64,000 nt of DNA, taken from contig RDEW01000026.1 in NCBI GenBank assembly GCA_011109175.1, positions 637,695 through 701,694 on the forward strand, read 5' to 3'. The notes under the pieces were generated by a model. It saw only the letters and a program-made list of their open reading frames with translations. It was not told the origin of the DNA and ran no database searches. This DNA comes from Dicyema japonicum. Taxonomy: Eukaryota; Animalia; Dicyemida. Made by a program: the position numbers and the translations under genes. This document shows, in pieces, positions 21,846 to 62,314 of the stretch. Within the stretch, counting starts at the first letter, position 1. Each line of letters begins with the position of its first letter.

Positions 21846-22725
21846 TCATGGCAATTCCTTAATTGAAAAATCATTTAAGCTAATTTCATCCTTTATAAGT
21901 TTCCTCTCTATATCTAGACATATTCAATTAACTGTACTTTTTAATAAAAATTCACAATATCTTAGTTTTTTCATGACTTCTTTAAGGATAAAGTTTGACC
22001 CCTTGTTTTTTTGGGTTTCCCTAATTTGAAATTCCTCATATTCGATCATTTTATTATTGCTGAAATCATAAATAATATTTTACAGAATTTTAAAGGTTAA
22101 AGACTGAGAGAGAGCAATCAATCGCTCCGTGAGCGTCCTCAATGAATCTGCTTGTAAACAACATGAAAAAGTATGATTTGACTATAATTAGAACGTATAA
22201 AACTGATATATGCGATCTTTTATCAGAATACATATTCTGGTCCTCAAATCCGAAAGATTCATTTACGATATTATCAACACTTTTAAAACTATCCCGTAAT
22301 CCACTTTTCCCACTTTTATAAACAATATTTTTTGATCTTCCATTATGTTTATCAATTTTATATTTTTGCCAAATTTCATTGATTTTTGTTTGATAATCTC
22401 TTTCTTTCACATTTAATGAATCTTTCATTTCATCAATTCTTTTCTGGTTTTGTCGATCAGTTGAAATTTTACTAAATTTTTAAATATTTAAAAACTCATC
22501 TGTTTTAGTTTGTACAATACTTTTGTTGTTCATTGCATTATTCAAATTATTAAGAACATTGGCTGTTTGGTCAAATAAATATTTAATTTCCTTTATGTCT
22601 GAATGGGGGGTATTTTTCAAATCATCTTTATATTTTTTATTCTCATTGGTGGAGAAAAAGTTTTTCAGTTTCTTGAATTTACAATCTGATTTATTAAAAA
22701 TTTTAATAATACTTATTGGTGACAT
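21846..22725 (-). CDS. Spliced host gene, 5 exons, 261-aa K/N/E-rich protein of unknown function
   Basis: Exons (minus) 22725-22496, 22471-22204, 22181-22084, 22059-21938, 21913-21846. GT-AG introns of 24, 22, 24 and 24 nt. Phases join into one 786-nt ORF MSPISIIK...KTDDKIS...SHISSNHTFSCCLQ...KILNNK...LKNIERK...KELP*. Confidence 0.8.
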
Positions 22726-23139
22726 TAAAGTTTATTAGTAATAACACGTGGTTACTATGGTGATAATAATTAAACTTTGGATAGTTGCCTTATATTAAAT
22801 TATTCCAAGACCAAGGGTAGACCAAGAGTAAAATCATTCCTATATCCTTATATTATTAATGTGGTGCTATGTGGTTATTCGTTTCAAAATTTTTTTTCCT
22901 TCCCTCTGATAACGTCACTGGATACACCTTACACAGTAGACGCCCAATGGTATTCAACTATTCTTTCTGTCGGGAGACAGTTTCGTTCTCTGGCGACGAG
23001 TTCTGGAACCAACCGCAGCTCCCCGGAAATTGTCCTCTAGATCACTGTTCTCGTGGAAGTTCTCCTGGAACGCGTCAGGATAAAGGGATTAGTTAGTTTT
23101 GTTTTACCCTTAGTCATTGGAATAATTTATTTTATTATT

Positions 23140-23450
23140 AGTCATATGTCACAATCATCTGTTTCCACTTGCCCACGTTATATAGCTCAGGCTCTGATCC
23201 AAAAATACAAGAGTACCGGAAAAAAATCAACGAGCTCCGCACAGAGAGAGGCAGAGTCCTAACAAAGATCAAACAAATAAAAAAATTCCTTTCTAGAAGT
23301 GAAGCAGAAAATCAAATTTCCGAAATAACGAAATATAAAGACGGACCAAGGACGTTTAACGCAATTCGCCAGCTTAACAGAAAAAGAAGTTCGGCCTCGA
23401 ACATTGTCCATGATAACCTCGGCCGTACTGTCATTAGTAGGGCGAACTAA
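23140..23450 (+). mobile_element. RTE-family fragment (APE-RT linker), homologous to 29400-29620
   Basis: LRTERGRVLTKIKQIKKFLSRSEAENQISEITKYKDGPR vs LRTQRGRVLTKIKQIQRFLAKNEAEEKISDILKYKNGPR. Confidence 0.85.
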
Positions 23451-23512
23451 GTTAAAAAAAGTTAAAATTTAATAATAGTAAATAAATAATCATTAAAATG
23501 ATTTTTTAACTA

Positions 23513-25259
23513 CAGTACGACCCCGCCTCAATAGAAAAGTGCCCCAAATATAGAGGGTATATAATTCTTACATTTAAAACTATTTTTAGATAATAAAATA
23601 TGTTGTTTCGATAAAAAAGATGATTTAATTTATTTATGAGAAATAATCAGTTATTTTGAACCCAGTATAATACTCATTTCTCAGAATCTTTGAAATTTTT
23701 ATTCTGAATTCATAGTATTCTTTGAGCCTTACAGGGCAAGTATTGAATAAAGAAGTTTCGAGATTATTCATTTTTCTTATTGAATCTTTTTAATATAACT
23801 AATCTCACCATTTTCATTGTACAAAGTCTCATTATCTTCAACTCCGATTATTTCAAGTTCCATTTACCCTGAAACATGCTTATCAATTAATTCAGATGCT
23901 TTTTTTTGAATTAATATCACGAACACATGTTCTCTGTTCGTTTATTTTCATCCAACAATTGACAATCGTTGTTGTTGTTACTCGATCACAGGCTTCTCCT
24001 ACAAATGCAATTATTTGCCTCATATTAATCTTCAATAGGGTCGAATAGTATTCATTTACATCGTCAAGACATATCATTTCATAAAGAACGTTGTTGTAAT
24101 ATGTCTTGAAAGAGTTTATGATTCGCACATCTAAAGGTTGAAGAAATGCTGCTGTATTTTTAGGAAATTTAAGAAATAATAAGTTTGAATATTCTTGATA
24201 TTTTTGGCACGGCGCATTATCCATAAAAATCAAAATTTTTCTGTTTTTTGACCATTTCAAAGTTTTTTTTTGTAACCATTTATCAAAATTATCAGTTGTC
24301 ATCCATCATATTTTGACGCTGTGTAAAAAACCTAAAAAAACCTAATAAAATATACCCCATAATGCTCAGTTTGTAGATTTTTAACCATCTTGGCGATTTA
24401 AATTTTCCGATAACAAGGGGCTTTAATTTCTCACCTTCAAGACTGCAGCATAAAAGAACTGAAACTCGTTCTTTGCTTTTCGTTTTACCAAAACAATCAT
24501 CATTTGAAGAGACAATTGATTTACATGAATTTTAACAAAAAGAGAGGTTTCGTCGCAGTTAAAAATATCTTTTTTCTCGTATTTATCAAATAAATTGTCG
24601 TAATCGTTAAAAAAAATCTTCGACTTTATTTCTGTCACATAAGTTCTTTTCACCCGAAATTACTTTGAACAATAATTCATGACACTTTTTTTAAATCGAT
24701 CCAACCATCCATTTGATGCTTTGAAATCATTGAAGTCAAGATTAGCTGCAATTTTTTTGCCATAGTTTTGAGAAATCTTGAAAATAAAATACCATCCGTT
24801 CTCAAATTTTTAAATACTTCGAATACTAATCGATCGATTCGAATATAAATATTTGATTCGAACTTCTTAGATGAGAGTTCATCAGAGCATATTTGTGTTT
24901 TTGAAACCCCTTTTCCAATTTCTTTTTTTAATTCGTGAGACAGTTCCTTTTCCAATATTGTATAAGTGACAAATTTTTATTTCTGACATATTTTCTTCAT
25001 TAAAGAATCGGAAATCTTCTGTTTCAGGTGGCGACTAAGCTTCGCAGGCATGCTTAAATAAAAATGAAATAATAAATTTTAATATTATCGATTGAAAAAG
25101 TGCTCCAATAAGCGGAGTTTAGTATTTTAAATTTAAGCTTCCTATTGGTCAAAAATGTAAAAAAATGTAAAAATCATTCAAAATAATATTTATTAAAAAA
25201 ATCGCCCCAAAACAGAGGGTGCTCCAAGGCCAGGGTTTTATTGGGGCGGGGTCGTACCG
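23513..25259 (-). mobile_element. Complete 1747-bp pogo/Tigger element with both TIRs and TA flanks; transposase degenerate
   Basis: TA|CAGTACGACCCCGCCTCAATAGAA ... TTTTATTGGGGCGGGGTCGTACCG|TA; minus frames give IFNCDETSLF, FMDNAPC and FLQPLDV. Confidence 0.9.
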
Positions 25260-26699
25260 TATATTTTATTATCAATAAATGTATATTAAAGAAAATTATT
25301 AGGTTAAAAAGTGCGCCAATTTTAAAATATTGGTGTTATATTGTCGTGTTGTGTTGATTTTTGCTATTGAGATATTCCTCCTATTCTTGACTTTCACCTA
25401 TTGTGATTCAGTGGAATGTTACTCGAAAAGTCATCGTCCAATTGCTCTGCCTGCAACATGAGCAATTTGAGAAAGTTAGGGATTTCTTGTTCTGCCTGGG
25501 GAGACTTCTTTCACCTCAGATGTTTGAAGCTCTCTCAGGCCTCCATCCACGCCCTAGGGATATGGCACTGCCGCTCGTGCCTTGGAATTGGCTGGGGGTT
25601 TCTTAATGGTCACGGAGTGCATACACCTCCGGAGAAGACCTTTCCCAATTGGATCCAGATTCGCTACTTAAACTTATCAATGAACGCCGTTCATCAAGGA
25701 GTATCTCGGTGAAGATCCCAAAAGCAGCACGCCCCCTAGCTGCCGAAGCCTTAACCAAAGCAATCGACGATGCTCTCCACTACGACTCTATAAACGACTG
25801 GGTACGTTTGTTTAATTTTGCTCCTTTCGCACTTGGCTCCCCCCGAGATCGCAATGGGAAACAGTCTCTCTCGATTGAAATGAAGAATAACATCCGCGCA
25901 TTTATGGATGGAACTCACTTTACGGACCTCACGTCCTTTTACATCCGTTCAACTGAGACTCGGAGTTCAACTCGGGAAACGGAGATTTTTCGCCTTAGAA
26001 AAACTGTACAATCGAAGTTGCTTGAAGGAAAAACCCGATTCGCATTGAAAGCCCTTTCACTCTCAGGTGGACCACGCAACCCAACCGCTAATACTTACAA
26101 AATTCTATTGGAAAAGCATCCACCCACTCCGAGTGACCTACGCCACTGTTCATTCTCATCAAAAGTGACCTCTTTGTCCACGTCGCCTGAAAATGTCATC
26201 ACGGCGTTAGGGAATAGACCACCAAGCAGCAGTGAAAGTCTCAATGGCTTAAGGCCCGGCCATCTTAAAGACTTTATTTCACCAACTATTGGAGACCAAG
26301 CATGTCGTCTCTCCTTCTCACTCATTTCTCTTATGAACAGGATATCATCTGGACATTTGCCTGATTTGATACGACACATCTTATTTTCGGCTAGTCTGAT
26401 TGCAGTCGACAAGAAGGGAGGTGGTATCCGTCCGATCGCCGTCGGTTTCACCCTTAGGAGACTAGCAGCCGAAATTGCTTTCAGATTTTCTACGTCAATC
26501 TTGTCAAAATCTTTACTCCCCAGTCAAGTTGGAGTCGAAGTTTGTCTTTCCGATTTCCGAATAATGTCGCTATTGCAGATGTTAACATTCCAGATTTCCG
26601 AATAATGTCGCTATTGCAGATGTTATTACGAAATTTGAAAGTATGCGCTTCACAATTGAATAAGCATATGATGGTTGGAATTTGGAAATAACAAAATCT

Positions 26700-27050
26700 T
26701 TGAGTTCAAATTTAGCTCATGAATAATACGATGAAAGAGACAAATGATGACCCGGGATTTTACTTTTCTATATTAGCACGCAGTAACACCAGGATGTCTT
26801 CCAACCATATTCGGAGCACCATTGCTGCACAAACATACAAGTTTCTTCAAATCAAACCTATAGTCAAAGAGAATTTGTAGTAGTTTTACAAAGATATCTA
26901 CTTGTAGTAGTATCGTGGATTGGTACATTAAAAAATGAATCGCTAAATGTGCAACAAAGATCGCTAATTGTGCAATTTCAACATCCAACATAGTCGACTG
27001 TTTCATTGATCTCAATTTAAGAATATACAAATTTTAACAATCCAGACATT
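26700..27050 (-). pseudogene. hAT (Charlie/GTF2IRD2-like) transposase fragment
   Basis: ORF 26773..27030: QSTMLDVEIAQLAIFV...DLKKLVCLCSNGAPNMVGRH. Confidence 0.75.
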
Positions 27051-27696
27051 AATTGATGTTTAAATTCAAAATTTGAAATTTTTTTAATAAATTTATTTTT
27101 TTGGAAGACGATTCTTTGAGGATTGGAATTGGACAAAGACTGGGACTAGACGTTTGCCAGGAGCACCGATGCCGATGCGGGAAAATAGTCGATGCGAATG
27201 GATTGCACCCGCTGTCCTGCAGAAGAAGCGCCGGAGAGGGACCACGTCATGCTGCTCTAAACGATGTGATAGTCAGAACCCTGAAGGCTACAGGCTTCAA
27301 GCACAAATTGAACCAGTGGGTCTTGATCGAGCAGATGTAAAGAGACCTGACGGGATGACCCTTTTCCCCTTCACATCTGGAAGATCTTTGGTCTAGGACA
27401 CAACATGTTACTCAGATAGTAGACACGTTCTAAATCACGAATATTTTCAAATCGGTTAAGACACCAGGAGCAGCTGCATCGACTGCGGAGAACCTAAAAA
27501 TCAAGAAATATTCTTGCCTCAGGGATCGCTACCGATTTACTCCTGTTGCGACCGAATCATCGGAGCCGTTGTCCAATGACGGCTGAGTTCTTGCGAGAAC
27601 TCGGAGAATGCTTGCCAGGAAGAAAAGGGATAAACGATAAGAGTTATGGCTAAGACAAAAGATTGGAAAGGCCATACTCCGAGGGAACTCGTTCGC

Positions 27697-27722
27697 AATC
27701 CACGCAGCAGGCTTCCTCAACT
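27697..27722. repeat. Target-site duplication, left copy (right copy 30746-30771)
   Basis: 26/26 identical; removing the insertion restores the CRE end ...GFLN TGA CATTTGT as seen in the uninterrupted copy at 19290-19485. Confidence 0.95.
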
Positions 27723-27765
27723 TATTATTTATTTTTATTTAAAGCACTCCCGAGAAGTCATAAAA

Positions 27766-29035
27766 TTAATCAAGCCTCCCTTGTGCCGTATTTCTAGCCA
27801 TCCTCTCTATCAGCCTTTTCCAGGACCCTCTACTTCGTGCCAGTTCCCTTAAGGTATCTAGGTCGTCTGCGGAAGTGAGCTTCAGTCCCACAGCCGACAG
27901 GTCTCCATTCAAAATAGTTGGGAGTGTGACTCTTGGTCTTCCACGGAAACCGGCTCCCGTATGCATTAGGTAGTTTTCCATGGCGATATTCGCGGGTACT
28001 TGAGCATTTAGACGTAAGATATGTCCAAAGAGACTCCATCTTGATCTGAAGATCTCCTCGGATAGTATACCAGATTTGCACTTCGAGTAGAGGTCATTGT
28101 TTGAGATCTTCTTAGGCCACTTGATCTTGATTACTGATTTCAATTGTGTCCTGTGGAAAGCGTCAAGACGGTCCATCTCTTGTTTAGAGATTCCCCAAGT
28201 GCCTGAATTGTAGGTCAGGACGGGGATGACAAAAGCCTTATATATTCTGAGTTTGGTGTTTAATCCCATCCTCTTCTTATGACCCCACATATTCGATACT
28301 TTCTTTAGTGCACACATTGCGAGGATTTTCCTCCGAGAAACATCTTCTGAGTCCCCGAGAAGCGAACCCACCTTCTTTTGCTTTCTCCAAGACTCGTCCG
28401 ATCTTCGATCATTGCGTGTAAGTGTTGTGAACTCTGTTTTATCGGTGTTAACGGTTAAGAACCATTTCGAGAATACGTGTGGAAGAACGTTAAGCATGTG
28501 TTGAAGTACTTGAATATCCTCAGAAACAAAGTCCAGGTCGTCCGCGTAGATTATCTCGTTATAATTGTTGCCAACCAGGGGTCTGAACTCTCTTAGTGCG
28601 GCCTCAAGGTAGACAATAAAGAGGACCGGGGATAGTGAGTCCCCCTGTGGAACTCCACGTGAGGTCGAAAAAAAGTTAGAGGTAGAGTCACCAATTTTGA
28701 CGGCAAGTTGAGTGTTCCGCATGAGTAAGTGTATTATTTTGACATCGTCAGGCAGTAGAAAACTCTCCAACACTTCCATAAGTTTTCCACGGTCCACCGA
28801 GTCGAACGCACGGGACATGTCGATACCAAGTATCTCAATAGATTTTTTGTATTTTTGGCACAGGGCACAATACCACCTGTGCCCCCATACCACGTCAGCC
28901 GTGGACCTGCCCGTCCGGAATCCACTTTGGCCGTCCGAAAGAAATATGTTCACCCTCTCCTTTATTCGGTTTAAAGCAATGAGGGATAATGTTTTTCGTA
29001 TGGAGGTTAGGAGTATAATAGGTCTGAAGTTGTGA
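27766..29035 (-). CDS. RTE ORF, RT half
   Basis: Open frame NFRPIILLTSIRK...YADDLDF...RGRPRVTLP...GRLD*. Confidence 0.85.
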
Positions 29036-30707
29036 GGGGGCCTTTACTTTTTCCCGGTTTTTGTAGTGGAATTAGCCACCCTTTTCCCAGTTCCAGTTCA
29101 TCTGCACCCTCGAGAGACCGGTTGAAAATGTTAGTAATCATTTCAATTAGCTCCTCCGGGCCGTATTGTAAAAGTTCTGCAGTAATGAAGTCTGGTCCGG
29201 CAGATCTTCCGGTATTTAATTTTTTAATAGCTTGTTGAGTTTCGGATATGGTAATAGGGCTAGTTAGAGTGTACTTGTAAGACTTCCGAGATTTCATTGC
29301 TTGGTCAGCCGCGTCCTGTTTGTTGAACATAAGGTCAAAATGGGATGCCAGAACGTTTGCTTTGTTAATGGTCCCGATAACGTCGTGACCAAGGTTGTCA
29401 TGGACAGTTAACGAAATTGGACAGTTTTCTCTGCTAAGAAGCCGGATTGCTTTGAACATTCTTGGTCCGTTCTTGTACTTTAATATGTCTGAGATTTTCT
29501 CCTCAGCTTCATTTTTGGCAAGGAATCTTTGTATTTGTTTGATCTTCGTTAAGACTCTCCCTCTCTGGGTGCGCAGTACTTTGATATCTTCCGGAGCGTT
29601 TGTGTTTTCCATCCGGAGTCTGAGCTCTTTCTGTGTTACAGAGAGTTGTCCGATATCCGGATTACATTGTTTGTGACGAGATTTGGTGATGTGACCAAGC
29701 ACACTAAAGGCTGTGTTTTGGATAGCAACCACTATTTCATCCCATAAGCTGTTTGTCGGCTGATTTTGGTTAATACTGTTGATGCTATCTCTCAGAACTG
29801 CACTATAACGACATTTGGTGGATTCTTCGTAGCGTAACCTCTCAGTGTCGAAACGTACTGAGGTAAGGCCTTTGTGTTTCCCGTGTATTCCATGGATTCT
29901 TTTAAGTACTAGCCGGGCGACCACAAGTTTATGATCGCTACTTGTTTCAAGTCCACCGTAAGATCTCGAGTCCTGTAGGAGGGCCTTCTGATGTTGCTTG
30001 CAGATAATATAGTCGATCTGATTGTATATATTGACTGTGTTTCCAGATTTGCCTTTTCTGGTACCAACCCACGTGGTCCTGTGTCTTGCCGGGTGCTTGA
30101 AACAAGTGTTGCATATGAGTAGGTTGAATGCCGTGCAAAATTGTATTAATGCCTCTCCGGGGATGTTACGGCGGTTTCTACCGTGGGATCCAATACACGT
30201 TTCACCAGGTCTTGCTTTTCCGGCCCTGGCGTTCCAGTCCCCGGCGATAAAAAGAAAGTAAGAGGATGAAAGTGAGTTGTACACACTTGTGAGAGTAGAG
30301 TAAAACGTATCCAGTTCTTCGATATTCGTTGATACACGTGCTCCGGTTGGGGCATATACATTTATGATGGAGATCACTGAGTTGAGTTTGTTTCCGCATT
30401 TGATTTGTAACACCGCGACACGGTCAGATACTGCCCATACTCTTGAGACACAGTGAAACAAGTGCCGATGAACAGCAAATCCGAGCCCATAGTGCCTGCA
30501 GTCTGGTGTGAGGGTCAAAAGGTAAAAATTCTGAAACAGTTCTGCTGATTGTTCGGTTATTTTCGTCTCTTGCAAACAACAGACAGAGATGTTGTATTTA
30601 CTCAGATCACGCGCCAATTGTTGTTTCTTGTAGCACTGATTGAGGCCTCGGCAGTTGAGGGATCCAAGTGTGAGGGGAGAAACTGGTAAGCAATACGAAG
30701 AAGACAT
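29007..30707 (-). CDS. RTE ORF, APE half (566 aa as assembled)
   Basis: Open frame with all APE motifs; adding one C at the 29036-29040 run fuses it to the RT frame (GPPHNFRPIILL), giving 980 aa. Confidence 0.85.
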   Translation of the reverse strand: MSSSYCLPVSPLTLGSLNCRGLNQCYKKQQLARDLSKYNISVCCLQETKITEQSAELFQNFYLLTLTPDCRHYGLGFAVHRHLFHCVSRVWAVSDRVAVLQIKCGNKLNSVISIINVYAPTGARVSTNIEELDTFYSTLTSVYNSLSSSYFLFIAGDWNARAGKARPGETCIGSHGRNRRNIPGEALIQFCTAFNLLICNTCFKHPARHRTTWVGTRKGKSGNTVNIYNQIDYIICKQHQKALLQDSRSYGGLETSSDHKLVVARLVLKRIHGIHGKHKGLTSVRFDTERLRYEESTKCRYSAVLRDSINSINQNQPTNSLWDEIVVAIQNTAFSVLGHITKSRHKQCNPDIGQLSVTQKELRLRMENTNAPEDIKVLRTQRGRVLTKIKQIQRFLAKNEAEEKISDILKYKNGPRMFKAIRLLSRENCPISLTVHDNLGHDVIGTINKANVLASHFDLMFNKQDAADQAMKSRKSYKYTLTSPITISETQQAIKKLNTGRSAGPDFITAELLQYGPEELIEMITNIFNRSLEGADELELGKGWLIPLQKPGKSKGPLTTSDLLYS

Positions 30708-30844
30708 AGTGCAAGTAGAGGGACGTCACCACCTCAACCAAAAAAAATCCACGCAGCAGGCTTCCTCAACTGACATTTGTTTAATTGTTAAAAAAATTAT
30801 TTTGTTTAAAAAAATTATTTATAATATTTATTATTTATTGCTGA

Positions 30845-33830: not shown

Positions 33831-33889
33831 GCATGTTTAACCATATTTATTATTAATATATTTAGATCATTTAACTAACACGTTGCTGG

Positions 33890-41530: not shown

Positions 41531-41758
41531 ATGCGAATGGTATTTCTCTGTCTTCTCTTTATGAAATGTTCTTGTCTTTTAAATGGGCTAGTGAATACAT
41601 TTAATAGATATTTTTACGGTGATGAGATCGATGAGGTTAATTTAAGATAATTTTAGGCTAATCAAATAAAAACGGTCATAATATTTTTTGGAATCTTTTT
41701 AACCAGTTTATTTTCTCTCTCGTTGATATTTTACATAATTTATAAAAAAAATAACTAA
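41531..41758 (+). CDS. Spliced microprotein gene, 68 aa: signal peptide, short acidic ectodomain, TM helix, KKNN tail
   Basis: Exons 41531-41635 and 41657-41758; 21-nt GT-AG intron with in-frame TAA. Product MRMVFLCLLFMKCSCLLNGLVNTFNRYFYGDEIDE/ANQIKTVIIFFGIFLTSLFSLSLIFYIIYKKNN*. Confidence 0.7.
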
Positions 41759-48440: not shown

Positions 48441-48519
48441 GAATAAGTTTCAGAGAATGTATAAACACCACAACAACACGCTGTAACAACACGTGCAAAT
48501 TTACAAAATACATATCTTA

Positions 48520-50330: not shown

Positions 50331-50415
50331 AATTTATATTATATTAAAACTATAAAATTTATATTATATTTCATTTTTTATTATTGAACCAGAAAACTAT
50401 TGTCATATCCCCTAA

Positions 50416-50800: not shown

Positions 50801-50993
50801 CAATAATAATATTTCATTTAAATTTATTAGCGTGATTTCTAATATTTAGTGATGAGTAGGGCAAACATTTTTTAACCTTAAAATTTGAAAAAATTTAACC
50901 TTAAAAAGTTAACTTTATAAACCAATTTTTTAAACCTTAAAATTAAAAAATTTTACTTTATTTATTCTCAATTTAAACATGTAAAAATAGATA

Positions 50994-52450
50994 CAGTAAA
51001 ACCTCTCGAATTCGCCAAATTCTCGAATCCGCCGTAATTTCCCAGGTCCCAAATTTGGCGGATTGATTTCGCGAATAAAAAAAACAATTGCACCTTTTCT
51101 TGAACAAGGAACTGTAAACACGGATGAGGATCCTATGCCTTATTGTGAGAAATCTAAATTCGATGATCAAGTTTTTGAAATATTTCAGAAACTACGCGAA
51201 GATGAGGTTCCAATATCAGGTCCTTTCGTAAAGAAAATTGCCTTATATACGGCTTCAAAAATTGGATTTGATACTTTCAAAGCTTCAAACGGCTGGCTTG
51301 ACAGATTTAAAAAGCGACATGAACTGAAATTTAAATCAATTTGTGCAGAAAAAAATTCATGTGACTTGACTTACATCAATGAGTTTTTTAAAATTCTTGA
51401 CGAGAAAATTATTCAATATGGAAGACAAAATGTTTTTAATTGTGATGAAACTGCTCTTTATATAAAAAGGACTCCACGAAAGTCGTTTGTAGAATAAATG
51501 AAGATACTTTTGGCTTTAAACAGGGAAAAGAAAGAGTCACTGTACTTCTTTGTTGCAATTCCATGGGGGAAAAACTTGATGCATTGATTGTTCGAAAATT
51601 TAAAAACCCTCGATGTCTCAAAAATTTCAATGTGAAAGATTTTGGAATTTCATATTCATCCTCTAAAAATGCATGGATGACTGGAAATATTTTTATGAGC
51701 TGGTTGACTCGGATAAATAAAAGATATTATACAATCAACAGAAAAGTATTAATATTGCTTGATAATGCGGGATGTCATAAAACTATTGAATTCTCAAATA
51801 TTGAGTATTTATTTTTGCCAAAAAATCCAACACCGTATTTGCAACCATTGGATATGGGAATTATCAAGACCTTTAAAGATTATATGATCAGTATTTGTGT
51901 TTTGATTCAGTATTTGTGTTTTGAGGAGGATGATGATGAATTCAAACGGTTGATAAACAAAATAAACCTTCGTCATGTATTTCTGCTAATTTCTAAAAGC
52001 TGGGAAAAACTTGATCCAAGTTTAATATTTAATTGTTGGAATCAAATTGAAAAGATTCGTGATTCCGTATAAATTGAAGATGCCATTACAGAAGAAATGA
52101 TCAACAATGCCGTAAACGAAACATTGAATGGGGAAACAGACGAATTCGTTGATAATATTTACAACGAAAGTTTAGAAAACGATAACATGGAAACAATTCT
52201 AAGAGAAACGCAAGAATTCAGTTAGAGAAGAAAATTTGTTACATATCTCCTGAAATGCTCAAAAAATTTTACGATTTTCGACTTAATTTTATGAAAAATG
52301 TAAGAAGTAAAAGGATTACTGGGGATAAATTAACTGATTATTTTTCTAAAATTGATTTTTGATGTTTAAAATCTCTGTTTTATTAAACCCCTGTTTTTGA
52401 GGTACCCCCGGTTTTTGGGGCACTTAGTGCCCCAATTCGGGGTCGGACTG
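50994..52450 (+). mobile_element. pogo/Tigger copy 2 with right TIR and a non-matching left end
   Basis: Left TA|CAGTAAAACCTCTCGAATTCG; transposase near-identical to copy 1 from 51063; right TIR caattcggggtcggactg|TA. Confidence 0.9.
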
Positions 52451-52589
52451 TATAAGGATTGCACTTACGAAAAGAAAGGAAAATTTAGAGAATCTTGTAA
52501 ACCACAGGGATTTTATTAAAACTATGATTTTTTAAATAAAAAATATTTCTTAAATAATTTCTGTATGTGGTAATAACTTTTTGACTTGT

Positions 52590-52668
52590 GAAATAAGGGG
52601 CGATAAAAAGATTGGAGGGACGAAAAAAATTGGAGGGGGCGATTAAATAAAAAGGTTGAAAATTACTG
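52590..52668 (+). mobile_element. hAT (Charlie-type) right end
   Basis: GGGGCGA subterminal repeats and AAAAAGGTTGAAAATTACTG|CTCTAGAT. Confidence 0.6.
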
Positions 52669-52826
52669 CTCTAGATCATTAGTGCCAAATACTCATAAGA
52701 GATGTGGTTCTAGTGACCTATTTACTGCTCACAAAAACGATTTGTGGATAATGATTTACGTATAACGTATGCCCGTATTGTATAGAGAATTATTCCACTT
52801 TATTCCTGATAATAAATTGCGGGCAA

Positions 52827-53200
52827 TTTTGGTGACGTCCCTCTTAGTGCTGGAATGTCTCAAAAATACTGTGAAAAATAGAATTTCTCCTTAATGACTA
52901 TTAATGTGAGAGGAATCAGTTCTGAAATACAAAAAAATCAACTTTGTCAACGGATTGGCTGACGCATGCCTTTAGGAAACTAAAGTACCCTCCAAACTGG
53001 GTAAAGACTAAGAATTTCTGTTTCTGACCGTAGCACTATGGAATGTGTTTGTAATGCATAAAGAAAGTATTGGAAAATCAATGACAGGATTTGCATCATC
53101 GAGATATGGACTATCAATAAGGCAACCAAATGCAATAAATTGCAATTAAATATAATTTAATAAAAGTAGTGAATAATAATTGTCGTATTGATACTGTCTG
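52827..53200 (+). mobile_element. Degenerate 5' end of an RTE-family LINE (short UTR + APE start)
   Basis: GGTGACGTCCCTCT...ATGTCT then LMTINVRGIS. Confidence 0.6.
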
Positions 53201-53444
53201 GGTTGATAAGACAAATTTATCACTTGAACACATTAGCACCACTAAATTTTGCTTCGAAAGATCTGTCCCTTGTTCCCTCAAAAAACAAAAAATTTTATTT
53301 TGAGTCAAAAAGCGATTAAGCGTGAAAAGGGTCGAAAAAGAATACTTGGATTGAAAACTAGTGTTTATAAATATAACATTTCTATTTATCGTGCTTCTGG
53401 AAAGTCACCTTTTCAGGTTAGCTTTATTAATTTTATTTTTTACA

Positions 53445-53990
53445 CGGACTCATAAGGTGCAATCTGTAGTAGAGAACACCAGGGTCCAAATTAAGGTAGA
53501 CAGTGTTATCCGTACCTCGGTGCTAGTCAAGCACAATAAACCGGACATTGTGGTACACGATAAAAAGTCTGGCCGAGTCCTTATCATAGAGGTTGGCATC
53601 ACGTCTCAAGACCGTTTGCAGAATGTGGAGGTGGAGAAATAAAGAAAGTATGACTTTCTTGCAAACGTGATGGGGCAGATGCTTGGTTGCAGGTCCTCGT
53701 TATTCCTATAGTAATGACGTGGGAAGTTATTGCAACAAAGTACCACAAGGGTTATCTGAAGCAGTTGGGGGTAGATGAGAAGCTCCAGGCTTATCTACAG
53801 TCCACTGTGTTAAAGCGGACCCTAGATAGCCTGACAATGGAGTATAGGAGGCAGAGCCCTGAGATGCCATATGGGCAGAGGTTTTAATTGGACAAGGCGC
53901 TCTCGGAGTTGTTTCAGCAACCAGAATCGAACCTGCCTGAGGAGGCTGGCGAACAGGTAGGCGAGGAAGGTTGTTGATTATTAAATATAT
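53445..53990 (+). mobile_element. R4-like family A 3' fragment (copy 3)
   Basis: KHNKPDIVVHDKKSGRVLIIEVGITSQDRL; matches 5640-6080 and 30845-31270 in reverse. Confidence 0.9.
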
Positions 53991-54029
53991 AAAACTTTTT
54001 TATTGTTTGTTAAATAAAGTGGGGTGTTT

Positions 54030-55487
54030 ATTGCTAATATATGGGACAATTTTTAAAGAATTAAATCAATATTTTTTGTTATTAACCTTATGACGTCAAA
54101 CAAGAGAAATGAACTTGATTTTAATACCAAAAACAAGATTGCTGAAAAAATCATAGAACAAAAAAGTTCTTATAGAGTAATTGCCCAACGATATGGAACT
54201 AACAAAACAGTCGTGGAAGAATAGCTAAGAATTTAGACAAATATACAAATTTCGATAACAGGCACGTTATCCGGACAAAATATATTCCAAGATTTGGTTC
54301 TTTGAACGAGTATTTGATTGGGGTCATTTCAAAATTAAGATCGCTGATGTGGCTCTCAGTTATTCTAACATTAAAGTCTCGCACTAAAACATAATGATAA
54401 TTCACTCAAGGGTGTAAAACAGTGGTTTTCATCATTCAAATGTCATAATATGAAATATAAACGGTTATCTGGAGAAGTTGCAAGTGCTGATTATATAACT
54501 GTGATGAAACATGCATTTATTTGAGAGGGCAACACAGCTATTCGTATGTACTACAGTCATCAAATGCAATGAAAAAAGACAGCGAAAAAATTACAGCATT
54601 GTTTTGTTGTTCAATGAATGGAGAAATTTGCATTATTTATTGGTAAAATTAAAGATCCTGGTGCTTTAAGCAATATGATTTTAAAGCAAACAATATTAAA
54701 TATGCTGCAAATAAGACAACTTGGTTAACGAAAAAATTTTTTATATATTAATGAACTGAAAAATAATTTTATTAAAGAAAATCGACACATTCTTTTGTTG
54801 ATGGACAATTTTAGCGGTCATAATATTGAAGAGCCAAGTAATATCAAATTTAACTTCATTCCTCCAAATACCAGTTCAGTAATTCAATTAGATATGGAAT
54901 TATTAAAGTAATTAAAAGTAAATAAAAGCTCAACTTCAACAGAATTTAATTAATCTTTGGGAATGTGAAGAAGTTAAATTTAAATCTATAAAATTGATAG
55001 TATATTTTGGATTAAAGAAGCCGTAAAGTTAATTTCTAAAGACACTGTTATTAATTGTTGAAAAAAGCTGGTTTGTACTATGAAGAAGTAAATCCTGACA
55101 ATATGGTGTTAGAAGATATTGAATTCAATGAACCTTTGGAAAATGAATCTGAAAATGTGAATGAATCAATATTTTTCAATCCCAAAATAACCTTTGAAGA
55201 AAGAATTGACCAAAATGATAAACCGTTTTCATATGAAGATTTAAAAGAAATAAGAATTAGACTTGGATCTCTTAAAAATGTGGTGTATGAATACGATATG
55301 TTCATTTGATGAGGTTTGAATCCAAATTAAATAAAGCTCCAATTAATAAAGAAAAAGTGATATTAGTATATTTGAAATAAATTTGTTGATTAAAAAATTA
55401 AAATATTATATGGGACAAATAATTATATGGGACGATTTTTAATAAAAAAAACCCCCTTTTTTGTCCCATATAAACGTGTCACTACTG
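54030..55487 (+). mobile_element. Degenerate Tigger element with ATATGGGAC subterminal repeats and an internal APE fragment (about 54230-54410, -)
   Basis: HTH NTKNKIAEK...RVIAQRYGTNK, YNCDET, LLMDNFSGH; right end GTCCCATATAAACGTGTCACTACTG|TA. Confidence 0.75.
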
Positions 55488-55489
55488 TA

Positions 55490-55645
55490 GTGACTTTGTA
55501 TGATGTTAAGTCACTTATTAAATCTTTCCTTTTATGTTTTTCTTTCAATCCACGGACGTGGAATGACGCCAGTTTGAAGAGATCATTAGTCATGTGTGAA
55601 ATAGACATAATTAATCAGAACCACGTTACCAGTTCAACCAACACG
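55490..55645 (-). mobile_element. RTE-family 5' end and APE start, truncated by the Tigger element
   Basis: TGGTTGAACTGGTAACGT...ATGTCT; KLASFHVRGLKEKHKRKDLISDLTSYKV. Confidence 0.75.
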
Positions 55646-55849
55646 AGGATTGAAAGGTTTGTTTAAAATATAATAAGCCAATGAAAGCTATAAATTTCAA
55701 AAGAAAAAGATTGAAATTATTAAATTGAGCCGTGTAGTAATGCAATTCGTCGTTCTACAGCATTTTATATTATTCGTGGATTCTTTAAGCAGAATTCAAA
55801 ATAGTAAATTACAAAATTGTCTATATCCCAAAATAATTGTTCATTTGTT

Positions 55850-57180
55850 ACGTATACAACCAATCACTTACTTTTTATTGATGACCTAAAATATAGAGAA
55901 GGAAGATGAGGATGATGAATAAGTTGATGAGTATTTCAGTGTGGTTGTAGTGTTGAGAAGTCTGTCACAAATCTTGAGTATATGAAAGATATAAAATTTC
56001 TGATAGACACAAAGACTATTGCTACCTCAGTGTTTTATAGGAGGCATGCTCACAATCATATAATCCGTGTTATTTCAAATATTGGAAGGTGTGGACTCTT
56101 TGGATTATTAATTTCATAAATATCATTTGCTTTTTATGGATGATTTGAAAATATTTGCTAAGAAGAGATAACAATTACTAGGATGATGGAAGACAAAAGT
56201 AGCATTTAAATCAGATGGACTTGAGAAAAACAGTGACAAGTAGGCTACCAATGTGGAATGCTTATTAAAGGATTTGATTGAACAGAGGGATATCGATATC
56301 TTGGAGTGTTAGATGAATGGAGTAACACTAAAACAGGAAATTTTACAAAAAATAGAAAAAGAATAGGTTTGACGAAACTGAATACAGAGAATAGATTCAA
56401 AGCAATAAATGAATACGCACTTCCACTTAACAATTGCTATATTGTAACCTGTATGCCAATCATGTTTAAGCTGATGACCAAATTGCTGGATAATGAGATG
56501 ACCAAATTGTCGAATACACAGTCTTAGGCCTATATGGTTCATCATCTTTGTAGTGATAGGTGGAGTATTAATTTGAACTATAATAGGTATCAAATAGGCA
56601 AGGTAATACTTAAAAGGACCATCCTTTAGGTTTATATCACGCCTCCACTCCTCTTTGTTTTCTGATTGGAACCAAAGTAAATACCAGTACGTTGTGAGGG
56701 TTTTTGTTTTAGTACAAACAATTTCATTTTATTGGTTCCACGCTCTAACAACCAAAGAGCACTACTTCACAAAGGTCTGTGCCATGGAGTTTTTTGATAG
56801 TACATAATATTCAAAGTCTGTGACTAACACACAAGTATGTAGAGAGTTAGTAATAGTCCTAGAGGAACACGAAGGAAATAAGTTTTGGGTGGTTCCGAAA
56901 CTCCAATTTCCCTTATGCAACAAGTTAACCTTCACTGTGGACAAATCCCTCAAATGAATTTGTGAATGGCATCGTTGCTATGTAAGACTTCACTAAATGC
57001 AAGGAATTTGTTCCTAAAACAAATCATTGAGTATTATTCAAGTGTTTAAAAATTAAATGAGTATGCTATCTCGTTGCTAAACTGCTACATATGTGTCGTG
57101 GAACTAGATCCCAGAGAGTATGATGAGATTGATGTTATGGTCCTTCTAATTTTCTAAGTATTTCACTTTCACGTAGAGAA
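55850..57180 (+). mobile_element. Degraded R4-like RT fragments (56440-57180 related to family A)
   Basis: NHLLFIDDLK-like motifs at about 55860 and 56125; TCMPIMFKLMTK; SLNARNLF. Confidence 0.7.
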
Positions 57181-57199
57181 AATTGGATATCAGTTTCAA

Positions 57200-57700
57200 T
57201 CTGGGAACTTAAAAAACCACAATTACTCCTCTGTCAACCTGTTCAACGACCTCTGGGAAGTCGAACTGGATGATGGCGGTTATTGAGCGGCCACATAGCT
57301 TTCGCTCCCAAAGATCGGATTAGAACTCCTAATCTTAGCTGGGGACATCGAACAGAACCCTGAGCCCCCAAAAATTGGAAATTTCTAAATTTTATTCAAT
57401 TTAACATAAAAAGCCTTGTACACAAATCCACTGAGTCTATTATCTTTCTCACTACTTACAAAATAGATATTGCCTTCCTATAGGAAACGACTATTCAGAA
57501 AATCAATTCTTCTTTATTTCAAAAATTATTCAATTTTTCCCCGTCAAACACTGGAGGCTGTGTAACCTTCATACACAAGTCTATTCCTTTCTTTGATATT
57601 TCTACTCGAACACACGGTCTGTTTTAGGTTAACAATCACATTGAGCTTACTTCCATCCTTGTCAAAATAAACCGCACAACTTACACATTCGTAAATATTT
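57200..57700 (+). mobile_element. LINE ORF2 start: 2A-like motif followed by APE
   Basis: LELLILAGDIEQNPEP (57320-57367), then after a frameshift FIQFNIKSL...IDIAFL*ET...GGCVTFIHKSI. Confidence 0.75.
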
Positions 57701-57809
57701 ACATCCTATCACCCGGTCTCTGTATGAAACAATATTCCCCAAACTGGCTGAATTACAAACGAATCAAAATGCCATAATCTGCGGAGACCTAAACGCAAAG
57801 ATCCACTTT

Positions 57810-58990
57810 CGTTATTATTATTATTTAAGCATTTCAAGAGAGCCACATTAATAATAGCATGTGCAGCAAAAGAAACAAAATTAGATTTCATCCTTTTCTA
57901 ACCTCATCTGTTCCTAGCCAAGGCTCTCATGATGTCCAGGTCGTCGGCATTTTTTAGATTTCTTTTAATATTGATTAGGTCTTTTTGTAAAACTATTGGC
58001 AGTGTTGTTCTAGGTCTTCCACGATAGCGGGCTTCTTGACTAACATAGTATGTTTCCATAGATATTTTCGGTAGGGATGTTAATTTTATCCTCAGAACGT
58101 GTCCGAAGAACTTCCATCGGGATTCCAGTACTTCTAAGCTGCTGCATCTCTTTATATAAATTCCTCAATATTTTCGTAGGCCAAGTAGTTCCTGTTATTT
58201 TTCTTAGCTGACCTCTGTGGAACGAGTCTAGTTTTTCCATATCCGCTGATGAGGTCGCTCAAGTTCCAGTGTTATATAAAAGTACGGGTTTTATGAATGA
58301 GTCGTATAATAGGATTCTCATTTTCGTGTTGATACCTCTTTGATTGAGCCATAGATTCTTCAGTTTATATAACTCAGCATTGGCTAGAGTTTTCCTACGT
58401 AAGATATCTTCGCTATCTCACATAAGTGAACCGAGTATTTTTACTTGTCGCTACTTCTCTTCTAGGACATTGTTCATCCTTCTTATCTCTGTGAGTTGTT
58501 TTCTCTCTGTTAACAGTAAGAAACCATTTCCCTAGTACATTTAGTGCTTTTTCTAATAGGTGTTCCAGGACCTCTTTGTCTTTAGAAATTAGGCCTACAT
58601 CGTCCGCGTAGATCACTTCTTCCGTCTTTCCTTGGTATAATGGTCAAGTTCCCTCATAGCGACTTAAAAATAAATTTTGAATGGTAGAGGAGAAAGGGAG
58701 TCTCCTTGTGGAGTGCCCGTAATTGTTTCAAATTTTCTTGAATAGGTCTTTCCGACTCTCACAAAGAGTTCAGTTTTGGAAAGTAGAATTCGGGTCATCC
58801 TTAGACTCGACTCATCAAGAAATCCGCTCAGCACCTTTCAGCATTAACTTGTTCCTGTTAACCGTGATAGGTCAATTCCAGAATATTGTGGCGTTACGGT
58901 ATCTTTGATATGTTGCACACCTCCATATGTGACTTCAGACCGCATCAGCTGTGGATCTCCCATCTCTTTCGTTAACCGGTCAAAAAGATA
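57810..58990 (-). mobile_element. RTE-family 3' half with (TAA)n tail
   Basis: GTPQGDSLSP, IYADDVG, LDSFHRGQLR, RGRPRTTLP; tail at 57812-57830. Confidence 0.85.
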
Positions 58991-59339
58991 ATGAGAGGTG
59001 GAATTTAGATTCTATCTCAACTTGAACATTTAGTCATCCTCAATGACAAAAAATCCAGAGCAGGACACTCCAATACTTCTCTAGACCTCTCTTTATGTTC
59101 TCCATCGATGTCGCGTAAAGTTATATATGACCTCCATTCATAACCCAATTCTTCTTTCAATCGAACTACTCTATTGTTAGGCACCGGAAAACCATAAATT
59201 ATGTCCAAATTGCTATCAGATTTTTCCATAAAAAATTCAAATCGCATAATGCCGTTTTATTCAAGATCAGGAATGTCATTAATTGAAGCAATCGTTCCCA
59301 ACTTTAATAGTCAAATTACAGTTAATCAACAAGAGGAAA

Positions 59340-59830
59340 TTGGAATGATGGAATAATTAGCACCAAACAAAACTTGAGGTAATGAGGGGACTTTATACAG
59401 TCGACAAAAAGTAGAATGTACACAGCCATGCATCCAGTATTGACAGGACCAAATTAAAGATAAATCTTTCTCTATGAATAATTTTTCTACTTCCACCTGT
59501 TTTAGGTGATCTTGAGATGTGTTTCTCACTTGTATTAGAATTATCTCATTCTTGATTTTGTTATATACGAAGATATCTGGTTTGTTGAACTGTATTTTTG
59601 TTTTACTCAGAATCGACTTTTATCTTAATATTCTGATAAAATCGACTGAATGCCTTTCAACTTTCTAGCCCTTTTGATTCCATATACTCTGTATAAATGG
59701 AGATGTAAGCATTTTACAACTTCGTTTTGTCCTCGGGCGTAATCACTATTCAACATTCTACCACACTGACTGACCAGGTGGTCAACAGTCTTCCTGTTTT
59801 TCTTGCAATGGTTACATAATGTGTCGCGAG
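59340..59830 (-). mobile_element. R4-like 3' fragment (zinc knuckle + RLE)
   Basis: LCNHCKKNRKTVDHLVSQCGRMLNSDYARGQN; FNKPDIF; SQDHLKQVEVEK. Confidence 0.85.
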
Positions 59831-59859
59831 CCACAGCAGTTACCGTCTATTTTCATTTC

Positions 59860-60181
59860 AGCCGGGTGGCATAGTGGTTAGGTGTCGGGCTAAAGTGACT
59901 TAGGTTACGGGTTCGATTCTCGCCGCTGATCATCTGGTGGAAGGTTCCACGCATCTACGATGCTAAATGGGTTTGACGAGTGACGCCGTCATCAGTGAAT
60001 ACTCACTGCGGAACTGGATTGTCTAGAAAGGACACTCACACAAGAAAGAGAAGTGAAGATCATTCCTTGGTTCTACGATTAGTTAAAATTAACTGTTCTT
60101 TACTTAAATAAAGTGTGTGTCCTGCCTATGCGTAGCTATATTACGGCTCTCGTGAAAAAGCTGTTATTAATTATATTATTT
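59860..60181 (+). mobile_element. tRNA-derived SINE, copy 1
   Basis: Head GCCGGGTGGCATAGTGGTTAGG...GGGTTCGATTCT with A box 59867-59877 and B box 59910-59920; hairpin-rich body; TTA-rich tail; second copy at 43225-43538. Confidence 0.9.
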
Positions 60182-60189
60182 GTATCCCA

Positions 60190-60660
60190 AAAAATCACAA
60201 GATGCTCTTAATTAGTAAAGAAGAAATGAGGACTATTGCTCAGGAGATTCACCAGAAAAATCACTGTGGACATAACGTTCTGGATGCGCTTTGTCGTAGG
60301 AGATTTTGCGCTATCAAAAGAACTGTTATTCGTCAAGTTGTAAAATACTGCAAATTTGCAGTGCCTCTCAAGCAGTACCTCTATCGAAAATGATGGCTTC
60401 AGATGACAAGAGTGAATAAAGCACATTTGAAAGGCTGTGTTTTTATACAATCAAACGCCTCACTCATCAACAGGTAACTTTGTGCTTTATTTTTTTTGTA
60501 GGTGTTAGTCCGTTTCAGAGATATCGAGGGATTCCGGATACAACACCATTGTGAAAAATACTAGACGGTGAAGACAACGTGGAAAGTGTGGATAATATTG
60601 CTGAATTAACAGAGCCAGACGGTAAAGACAGCCCGAAACATATAGTAAAGGTTTTTTGTC
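60190..60660 (+). pseudogene. Gypsy-type integrase (Ginger/GIN-like) remnant with a 28-nt intron; DDE core deleted
   Basis: H2C2 region IHQKNHCGHN...VVKYC; then KAVFLYNQTPHSSTG|VSPFQRYRG, joined only by removing GT-AG 60474-60501. Confidence 0.7.
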
Positions 60661-60849
60661 TATAATGTTACAAAAATGATTACAAATTTGATTTTTCTCG
60701 GGTAGACATGAATTCTCCCTACAACAAAATAAACACAAACAGCAACTTACAACAAAATAACACACCGTATTAAAAAGATAATTATCAATAATTAATGTTT
60801 GCTTTAAAATAATTGATTATTTTATTTTTTGACAATGATTGATATTGAT

Positions 60850-61470
60850 TTCAGCTATCAGAAATAACGTCTGTGGCTCGGAACCTGCTGTGGCATAATG
60901 TTCCCGACGTAGAAAAGAAAAAATTCTTGTCTATCAAGAGGCAATACATTACTTTACTTCTTGGGCCGATATTTTTGTTGACAACTATTCTTGAGAACAT
61001 AACTTCCCCCATCTTCAAAACACCCAAATATACAAAGTCTAACAGCATGATAACGATTTATTTTTTTTTAAAATGACTTTTCCGAATTCATCTCCAGGCC
61101 GGAAACATGAAAGAACTCGCGAACAACTTCCATCATTTGAATAACAGTGTCTTCTTTTAGCTTAAATATCATTAGATCGTCAAAAAAACAAATGATTGGT
61201 AGAATTAGTCAGAGTATTAGGATCCTCCTGATTAATTTATAGTTTTGGGGACATAGAGTTAAGGGTCTGCTTTAGGGTTCCATTACCAGAATCTCCTTGC
61301 AGAATTCCACGTCCCAGCTTTACAGAACCAATTCTTCTTCCATCTAAATGGAGATATACAGTCCACATCTTGACTATGGTCTTTACAAAGTTAACAATCC
61401 AACTAAGTGTTCCTTAAGAGTCCAATACATTAAATAAAAATTCATGATCAACAGAATCAAAAGAATAGAT
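60850..61470 (-). mobile_element. R4-like fragments (family B-like RT and knuckle pieces)
   Basis: Aligns by eye to 15540-15950; NIGPRSKVMYCLLIDKNFFF. Confidence 0.75.
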
Positions 61471-61905
61471 GATATAATTAATTATACCTATTGATTATTT
61501 ATGACCTAATTGGGCTAATATTGAAATCAAATTATATGTGATTCACCACCAAACAAAATTTACTACACTAATCCATATATTCAAACAATGATGAAACACT
61601 CACCATGTTCTGTTGTAAAACTGAGTCATCCGTAAAATGTTCTCTTTACGACTCTATTCAAACTTAGTCATCCTGCAATGTAAATAACCCCTGTGGTCAT
61701 CACCCGTATGGAATGTCAACTTGGGTATTCTCTTAATATGGGTGTGCAGCGCATGAAACACCAATACAGGTAATAGGCCCCAAGAAGAGAAGGCTGAATT
61801 AGAGGGACGTTATAAAATAATTACTTTTAAATAAGCATTGTTAATGTTTTTGAGTTTGGTAGTCCATAAAATTATTAACCCAAAAAGTGATTTATTAGCA
61901 AAAAA

Positions 61906-62314
61906 TTAAATCCCAAAACTAAGTTGTCTTTTTCTAAGTAAAAGACTAATTCCCAGCATAATGAAACAGCCAGTTAAGAATAAGGTAATATGACGAGTCT
62001 CATGAATACCATGTGGAATGCAGGGCGTCTTATATATGAACTGACCGCATCCACCGTTAAAATAATGATTCCCATACTTACAAGCTGTAAAGTCATCATT
62101 ACTAGAGCATTCCTTGCACTCCCTAAAGTTAATTTTCCAATCAGGACAAATGATGTCTTGTTTTAGTCACTTAACCAACCATGTTTGGAGATACTGAACC
62201 CAAATAGAAAGTGATAGACTCCCAAGAAAACATACCCCCTTAAATAGTACATTAATTATACCCAATCATAGTTATGAGTACTATGAGCACTGATAGCAAC
62301 AAAGCACTACGCAT
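61906..62314 (-). CDS. Candidate spliced gene, 120-aa membrane protein with Cys-rich loop
   Basis: Exons 62314-62262, 62238-62180, 62156-61906; two 23-nt GT-AG introns. Hydrophobic N-terminus, six loop Cys, TM ITLFLTGCFIMLGISLLL then RKR; AATAAA 10 nt after the stop. Confidence 0.5.

Follow-up and report, generated by a model that had tools for sequence, protein, structure and literature searches.

Does the Dicyema japonicum DNA analysed here, a stretch of 64 kb (the window), contain genuine spliceosomal introns of little more than 20 nt, and what would tell them from the similar GT...AG segments around them? The ultra-short intron class is not in itself new, having already been published for dicyemids (PMC2222250, PMC6543705, PMC6736024, PMC13644364). 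A length of 26.2 ± 1.9 nt has been in print since 2007 (Aruga et al. 2007, PMC2222250), followed by a median of 27 bp (Zverkov et al. 2019, PMC6543705; on ultra-short introns also Ogino et al. 2010, as cited in PMC6543705), and Hadjez et al. 2026 (PMC13644364) describe reduced splice signals: GTa at the donor, AG at the acceptor and a weak A-run.

The original prediction proposed eight introns of this kind. All eight intervals are present, begin with GT and end with AG when read on the strand of the proposed open reading frame (ORF), and measure 24, 22, 24, 24, 21, 28, 23 and 23 nt. Their donors are GTTTTT, GTTTTA, GTAAAA, GTACAG, GTTAAT, GTAACT, GTATAA and GTTGGT, and their AT content ranges from 0.65 to 0.92, compared with 0.73 in the exons of the gene that holds four of them (gene 1).

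Gene 1 and its short introns

Gene 1 becomes an ATG-to-stop ORF once four introns are removed. The features below include the outcome in X5, an RNA-type run.

21846-22725, minus strand: gene 1, five exons, 261 aa, lineage-specific
22496-22725, 22204-22471, 22084-22181, 21938-22059 and 21846-21913, minus strand: exons of the spliced ORF
22472-22495, minus strand: intron 1, 24 nt, phase 2, 92% AT, donor GTTTTT, in-frame TAA; spliced and retained
22182-22203, minus strand: intron 2, 22 nt, phase 0, donor GTTTTA; spliced, exactly 22 nt absent from the X5 contig
22060-22083, minus strand: intron 3, 24 nt, phase 2, donor GTAAAA; spliced, exactly 24 nt absent from the X5 contig
21914-21937, minus strand: candidate intron 4, 24 nt, phase 1, 71% AT, donor GTACAG, in-frame TGA; predicted

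Coding potential was compared with a null model of composition-matched random DNA in 1.2-kb tiles (1272 tile-strands). Only 1 of the 1272 contained an ORF that reached 261 aa with at most four mini-introns, placing the spliced ORF of gene 1 above chance. The gene is a fast-evolving orphan, and for this reason its intron positions are incomparable with those of other animals. Its exon pieces gave no Pfam match at a family's curated cut-off and only a few weak matches, while exon 2 returned zero candidates in a word-indexed homologue search and 0 matches in an exhaustive phmmer search of 1.84 billion representatives. A tblastn search of the 64-kb window with the three spliced products proposed for it (261, 68 and 120 aa) found no paralogues. 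The 5' extent is uncertain: RNA-type contigs stop at 22551, and translation could instead begin at an in-frame ATG at 22533. If candidate intron 4 were kept in, the protein would end at 243 aa and not at 261.

Splicing was assessed by comparing the gene 1 region with the Logan contigs of X5, an independent 2017 run from a different sample and study. An automated guess labels this run 'DNA?', and its RNA nature is deduced from the coverage pattern: because depth is zero inside introns 2 and 3 and in the gene 1 flanks, X5 behaves as RNA-derived. Its contigs span only 22006-22551 of gene 1, with nothing below 22006, so that intron 4 and both ends of the gene lie outside the coverage. In a 420-nt contig over 22006-22471, precisely the segments 22060-22083 and 22182-22203 are missing, and the contig ends at the exon edge 22471. 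At intron 1, the loose end AAATTTTA (22464-22471) directly precedes 22496, joining 22471 to 22496. The DNA runs keep all gene 1 intervals (X1, X2 and X4 are named for intron 2). The two gaps and the 22471/22496 junction therefore indicate that three of the four gene 1 introns are truly removed, each being precisely absent from RNA-type contigs and present in DNA, with boundaries that the gaps and the junction leave in no doubt. GT-AG introns of 22-24 nt are really removed in this genome, which confirms mini-intron splicing for three of the eight proposed intervals, and gene 1 is a real, transcribed, lineage-specific gene.

Retention differs among these introns. Intron 1 is kept in about half of the X5 depth (three unspliced records ∼26-31, exon contigs 51-57), and no description of such retention was found in the dicyemid intron papers cited here. 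No unspliced X5 contig is present at intron 3; missing unspliced forms at introns 2 and 3 are non-quantitative, as Logan contigs lose rare variants. At intron 2, the search offers 22138-22159 as an equally frame-restoring alternative, which is unused in X5. At least three mini-introns (24, 22 and 24 nt) are thus excised exactly where the GT and AG were predicted, and the weakest, intron 1, often stays in.

The 24- and 22-nt gaps in X5 might also be read as DNA differences, with another strain carrying either alleles that lack the introns or a retrocopy. The 'DNA?' label, the different sample and a 3-nt indel allele at 22518-22521 would fit such an origin. However, each deletion runs precisely from a GT to an AG, and together they bring the exons into a single frame; X5 has no depth beyond the exon part (at 21400-21969 and 22597-22938), intron 1 is found both spliced and unspliced within this one run, and the size of X5 (11.9 Mb, 43,489 contigs) is transcriptome-like. 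DNA differences are thus an extremely improbable source of the gaps, and splicing is the reading retained here.

Choice among GT...AG pairs and candidates outside gene 1

The RNA-covered stretch contains 16 GT...AG pairs of suitable length, 3 spliced and 13 not; length and GT-AG termini are therefore insufficient for recognition. In AT content the spliced pairs take the top three places among the 16, a 1 in 560 outcome by rank that involves three introns and overlapping decoys. The donor begins with GTT in two of the confirmed introns and with GTA in one, and A residues lie 5-9 nt before the AG in all three, a sample too small for a logo. A tRNA and Rfam scan of the window, spliceosomal snRNAs included, returned nothing. 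Because only the three most AT-rich pairs are used, a normal U2-type spliceosome is the most likely agent; it would act on minimal signals like those published for this lineage: the GT, a short body rich in A and T whose A residues stand a few bases ahead of the AG, and the AG itself. Ordinary GT-AG spliceosomal introns have most likely shrunk to ∼20-30 nt among dicyemids.

The remaining proposals lie in two other parts of the window.

41636-41656, plus strand: candidate 21-nt intron in a proposed 68-aa ORF (41531-41758), AT 0.86; not distinguishable from chance
60474-60501, plus strand: candidate 28-nt intron (CAG/GTAACT...T8GTAG/G) in a degraded integrase-like relic; not supported
61906-62314, minus strand: proposed Cys-rich membrane protein, a 120-aa predicted ORF after two 23-nt removals
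62239-62261, minus strand: candidate intron 1 of the proposed 120-aa protein, 23 nt, 83% AT; ORF only
62157-62179, minus strand: candidate intron 2 of the proposed 120-aa protein, 23 nt, 65% AT, within the unspliced-decoy range

Removal of each of the eight intervals had been claimed to yield a continuous, protein-like frame. It does so in gene 1, at 41636-41656 and at 62239-62261 with 62157-62179, and fails to do so at 60474-60501, where the frame (60420-60551, 44 codons) is already open. Around this last interval stops occur in all frames, GT-AG ranks 76th among 256 boundary pairs, and the flanking pieces gave no Pfam match. As an intron it is unsupported: the element is dead, the frame is open across the interval, and removal shortens it to a 38-codon stop-to-stop frame.

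Could all eight nevertheless be genuine introns, and the ORFs of 68 and 120 aa, together with the transcript of the integrase relic, real spliced genes? The GT-AG termini and lengths of 21-28 nt match the confirmed class, and 41636-41656 (0.86) and 62239-62261 (0.83) are as AT-rich as the confirmed introns. The 120-aa product is coherent in layout (the N-terminus is hydrophobic, a Cys-rich stretch follows, and a second hydrophobic segment at the C-terminal side precedes basic residues), and only splicing supplies its Cys-rich frame with a start codon. Such ORFs are, however, frequent in random sequence: under the null model, 52% of tile-strands hold at least 68 aa with at most one mini-intron, and 11% hold at least 120 aa with at most two. 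The same frames are rescued by many other dinucleotide boundary pairs (several at 41531-41758), and a permissive search yields similar spliced ORFs throughout transposable-element debris. Neither a family, a homologue nor an Atlas match supports them: pieces of the 41531-41758 ORF had no Pfam match, and the Cys-rich exon had no Pfam match at a curated cut-off, gave no candidates in a word-indexed homologue search and reached only low scores in the Atlas search (≤0.76). Furthermore, the frame at 60474-60501 stays open without removal, and 62157-62179 and candidate intron 4 (21914-21937) are no richer in AT than unspliced decoys, within whose range they fall. That all eight are introns is accordingly improbable. 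Only the ORF of gene 1 exceeds chance, and the candidates at 41636, 60474, 62157 and 62239 are indistinguishable from it.

In-frame stops in introns of 3n length

The original prediction also held that every candidate whose length is a multiple of three (3n) carries an in-frame stop, as in genomes where translation polices splicing. As a description this stands, for all four have one: TAA at 22472-22495, TAA at 22060-22083, TGA at 21914-21937, and TAA plus TAG at 41636-41656. A Paramecium-type surveillance, in which in-frame stops are selected in 3n mini-introns and retained-intron mRNAs are caught by nonsense-mediated decay, would account for this pattern, which is documented in ciliates (PMC5014332). 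About half of the X5 depth keeps intron 1, a 3n intron that contains a TAA, and retention is therefore frequent enough for stop selection to matter. As evidence of surveillance, the claim is much weaker. Composition alone puts an in-frame stop in 56% of AT-rich 21/24-nt GT...AG segments, so that four of four has p ∼0.1, and for two of the stops the splice sites themselves provide the letters (G/TAA, TAG), the donor of intron 3 supplying its own TAA. The rule is probably an ascertainment artefact, because the candidates were found via ORF breaks and stop-less 3n introns are invisible to such a search. Nor are 3n lengths depleted below one third in this tiny sample (4 of 8 candidates, 2 of 3 RNA-confirmed). 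Selection of this kind is doubtful here; the in-frame stops are as expected from AT-rich sequence, splice-site letters and the route by which the candidates were found.

A broader proposal, which we put forward only tentatively, is that mini-introns are spliced with frequent errors (a 24-nt intron stays in about half of the molecules), that 3n mini-introns would then be depleted, or enriched for in-frame stops, across the genome, and that AT-richness, and not a branch or donor motif, would be the main discriminator of real introns. If true, a ciliate-like translational proofreading of splicing would have evolved independently in a metazoan. A search for literature combining Dicyema with 3n-intron analysis found none.

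Known mini-intron systems and consequences for annotation

The confirmed introns do not differ in kind from those published for dicyemids. They are GT-AG introns of 22-24 nt (published mean 26.2 nt, median 27 bp), with a donor that seems to hold little beyond GT(a), an AG acceptor and A residues a few bases before it; the half-depth retention of one intron is the only distinct point. The background is also alike, the window being repeat-rich, with 37.1% GC and a heavy LINE load, which fits the published D. japonicum genome (GC 36.7%, 49% repeats, multiple LINE-1 ORF2 copies; Lu et al. 2019, PMC6736024). The RTE element in the window nests in an Octopus sinensis RTE clade, and its nearest named relatives are all from Octopus sinensis. 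The octopus is a dicyemid host.

Two other lineages invite comparison. In the tiny introns of ciliates, 3n lengths are depleted and stops enriched (Bondarenko and Gelfand 2016, PMC5014332; for Paramecium, Jaillon et al. 2008, as cited in PMC5014332), and these introns resemble those described here in length (∼25 nt), AT-richness, 3n examples with in-frame stops and retention of a stop-bearing 3n intron. Unlike the ciliate case, the present one concerns an animal with the standard genetic code, shows no 3n depletion in this small sample, and has stops at a level not clearly above what composition predicts. A ciliate or other variant code was considered and rejected, because the standard code gives long transposable-element ORFs in which Pfam domains are recognised. 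Myxobolid myxozoans, the other animal group whose introns fall below 30 bp, likewise have ultra-short GT-AG introns (median 22-27 bp; PMC13644364); the signals at their 5' and 3' ends are reduced as well, and the A-run is weak. They form a different lineage, and a myxobolid source for the window is very improbable: its octopus-like RTE, GC and repeat profile point to a cephalopod parasite. Myxozoans have fish and annelids as hosts, are described as comparatively poor in transposable elements, and in H. salminicola reach a GC content of 29%, as against 37.1% in the window.

Taken as a whole, the observations are very probably best explained by dicyemid nuclear DNA with mini-introns of the ordinary spliceosomal kind, in which gene 1 is real and spliced and the other candidates are unproven. 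The expectation that ORF-based annotation misses genes is borne out by gene 1, which ORF scanning alone would miss. An independent locus thus confirms the failure of ORF-based reading, and intron-aware annotation should admit introns down to about 20 nt. At the same time, caution is needed: in AT-rich, transposon-filled DNA, chance alone usually lets a frame continue once a 20-30 nt GT...AG segment is removed, and weight should be given solely to RNA evidence or to long ORFs with several introns. A ciliate-type 3n/stop signature in a metazoan with mini-introns, and the choice of a few among many GT...AG pairs, would be of moderate interest for the minimal requirements of the spliceosome.

Gene 1 and its introns

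The original prediction named eight very short introns, and all eight intervals are present as described (8/8), each bounded by GT and AG on the strand that the proposed ORF uses. Removal of 22472-22495, 22182-22203, 22060-22083 and 21914-21937 (introns 1 to 4) from the minus strand yields a 261-aa ORF running from ATG 22725 to a stop at 21846, here called gene 1.

Features of the window (coordinates; strand where assigned; description)
21846-22725; minus; gene 1, 261-aa spliced ORF, three introns shown by RNA-type evidence
27766-30707; minus; RTE element with an intact 566-aa ORF
41636-41656; candidate intron, AT fraction 0.86; removal gives a 68-aa ORF
60474-60501; candidate intron of 28 nt; frame 60420-60551 is open without its removal
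62239-62261 (AT 0.83) and 62157-62179 (AT 0.65); candidate introns; removal gives a 120-aa Cys-rich ORF

The full gene 1 locus is found in four 2019 sequencing runs from one sample, one of which carries it in a single near-identical contig. These runs are DNA and are probably the source of the assembly. A 2017 run from a different sample and study (X5; 43,489 contigs, 11.9 Mb in total) contained 44% of the sampled words and was compared over 21400-23100. Its automatic label, 'DNA?', is a guess, and despite it the run behaves as RNA-derived. A 420-nt X5 contig spanning 22006-22471 lacks exactly 24 nt at 22060 and 22 nt at 22182 and terminates at the exact exon edge, 22471; an X5 contig also joins the eight letters of 22464-22471 directly to 22496. 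The depth of each bin is the product of contig depth and the bin's exonic fraction, which puts the depth within introns 2 and 3 at zero; the flanks of gene 1 likewise have zero depth. Because shifting either deletion by a single base alters the joined sequence, the GT and AG boundaries of introns 2 and 3 are fixed. The RNA also selects 22182-22203 as originally proposed, and not 22138-22159, an equally frame-restoring alternative returned by the search.

Intron 1 is spliced incompletely. Three X5 contigs run unspliced across 22472-22495 at a depth of ∼26-31, versus 51-57 in neighbouring exon contigs, so about half of the molecules keep this intron. Genomic contamination as the source of these contigs was ruled out, since neither the flanks nor introns 2 and 3 have any depth. 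X5 coverage extends over 22006-22551, so that three of the four introns proposed for gene 1 are shown in RNA-derived contigs, while the fourth, 21914-21937, falls outside. So do the 174 nt at the start of the ORF, which makes ATG 22533 an alternative start.

The product of gene 1 is a Lys/Asn-rich orphan. No piece of it reaches the curated cut-off of any Pfam family, no homologue was found by word-indexed search or among 1.84 billion representatives, and the window contains no paralogue. At 22518-22521, X5 holds two alleles of similar depth (28 and 23), one of which is shortened in frame by a net 3 nt in exon 1, so that Ser-Ile becomes Val. Such an indel polymorphism is compatible with coding, and it argues mildly for coding constraint on gene 1.

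Reading-frame continuity and the remaining candidates

The dynamic-programming search sought the longest ATG-to-stop ORF with GT...AG skips of 20-30 nt permitted, and as a null every 1.2-kb tile was simulated with a first-order Markov model, for a total of 1272 tile-strands. An ORF of 68 aa or more that used no more than one skip turned up in 52% of these null tile-strands. For 120 aa or more and a maximum of two skips the share was 11%, or about a dozen per window, and 261 aa or more with no more than four skips was reached by a single tile-strand (1/1272). Among the 256 possible boundary dinucleotide pairs, GT-AG ranks 22 at the real gene 1 locus, the top-ranked pairs listed all being much commoner A/T dinucleotides. 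It is tied with several other pairs for the 68-aa ORF, ranks 48 for the 120-aa ORF and 76 for the 28-nt case at 60474-60501. When as many as five GT...AG skips of 19-32 nt are allowed, the real window yields 'spliced ORFs' (170-795 aa) nearly throughout, most of them bridging frameshifts within decayed copies of LINEs, Helitrons and DDE transposons. Taken together, the chance rates, boundary-pair ranks and permissive search leave gene 1 as the only candidate that stands on sequence alone.

The set of eight mini-introns holds for the three in gene 1 seen in RNA-type evidence. It fails at 60474-60501, whose removal was said to give a continuous frame: 60420-60551 is already open across the interval, and removal shortens it. 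As introns, 41636-41656, 62157-62179, 62239-62261 and 60474-60501 are unproven. The Cys-rich and 68-aa candidate products have no Pfam match, and no homologue of the former was found.

Stop codons and intron recognition

It had also been proposed that every mini-intron whose length is a multiple of three (3n) carries an in-frame stop, as under surveillance-type selection. The count is correct (4/4); the selection does not follow from it. Of all the window's GT...AG segments that are 21 or 24 nt long and at least 70% AT, 56% contain a stop in frame for any one phase, which gives 4/4 a p of ∼0.1. The letters of the splice sites themselves make two of the stops (G|TAA, TAG). Because the introns were found through interrupted frames, one of 3n length without a stop would have escaped notice. 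The only unbiased sample, the RNA-covered stretch, holds two 3n introns, both with a stop, and is uninformative. In ciliates, 3n depletion accompanies the stop effect (PMC5014332), whereas half of the candidates here are 3n, so nothing here suggests depletion of the ciliate type. The 3n-stop hypothesis is not supported by this window.

The RNA-covered 22006-22551 contains 16 GT...AG pairs of 18-32 nt, and decoys of this size range stay unspliced, including a 24-nt pair at 22243-22266 (67% AT) whose GTAAAT donor looks better; a suitable length together with GT-AG termini is thus not enough for splicing. The three spliced pairs are precisely those with the highest AT fractions (0.92, 0.83 and 0.77, with decoys from 0.72 down to 0.52), which is a lead to AT-richness as the mark of used introns, from a small, overlapping sample. 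By this yardstick 41636-41656 (0.86) and 62239-62261 (0.83) look intron-like, and 21914-21937 (0.71) and 62157-62179 (0.65) sit among the decoys.

Genomic setting and known dicyemid introns

Open frames of 70 codons or more in the window are nearly all transposable-element debris. The standard genetic code fits, with long ORFs carrying Helitron, Pif1, reverse-transcriptase and endonuclease domains, and scans of the 64 kb for tRNAs and Rfam families gave nothing. Mean GC is 37.1%, versus 36.7% published for the Dicyema japonicum genome, for which 49% repeats and multiple LINE-1 ORF2 copies were noted (PMC6736024). DNA-run word depth is ∼550 over gene 1, 6,800-42,000 just upstream (22939-23100) and ∼1,370 downstream (21400-21456); gene 1 is apparently a single-copy island of ∼1.5 kb flanked by high-copy repeats. 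Contigs of all three DNA runs compared have two additional letters (AT) behind 21519 and one additional G behind 23052, both outside gene 1 and probably small assembly indel errors or variants.

The nearest named relatives of the RTE ORF are six Octopus sinensis entries (best two, 53-57% identity), and it nests inside the clade of these six sequences with local support of 99 (FastTree, 63 rows). Octopus is a host of dicyemids, so the nesting is a lead for a possible host-parasite horizontal transfer; shared lophotrochozoan ancestry and sparse sampling could also account for the likeness. Together with the GC and repeat figures, the octopus affinity of the RTE points indirectly to a dicyemid source, most likely Dicyema japonicum.

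Very short, uniform introns in dicyemids are not new, as the original prediction acknowledged. They have been known since 2007 (16 introns, mean 26.2 +/- 1.9 nt; PMC2222250) and a genome-wide study bore them out, the median being 27 bp (PMC6543705); the Dicyema japonicum genome paper gives a mean of 38 bp (PMC6736024). A 2026 comparison describes splice signals reduced to 'GTa' and 'AG' with a weak A-run; for its myxozoans it infers a U2-dependent spliceosome of the conventional kind (PMC13644364). The mechanism would be the already published one, in which an ordinary spliceosome removes miniaturised introns. The yield of 'spliced ORFs' under permissive search is a warning for other mini-intron calls in the Dicyema japonicum genome.
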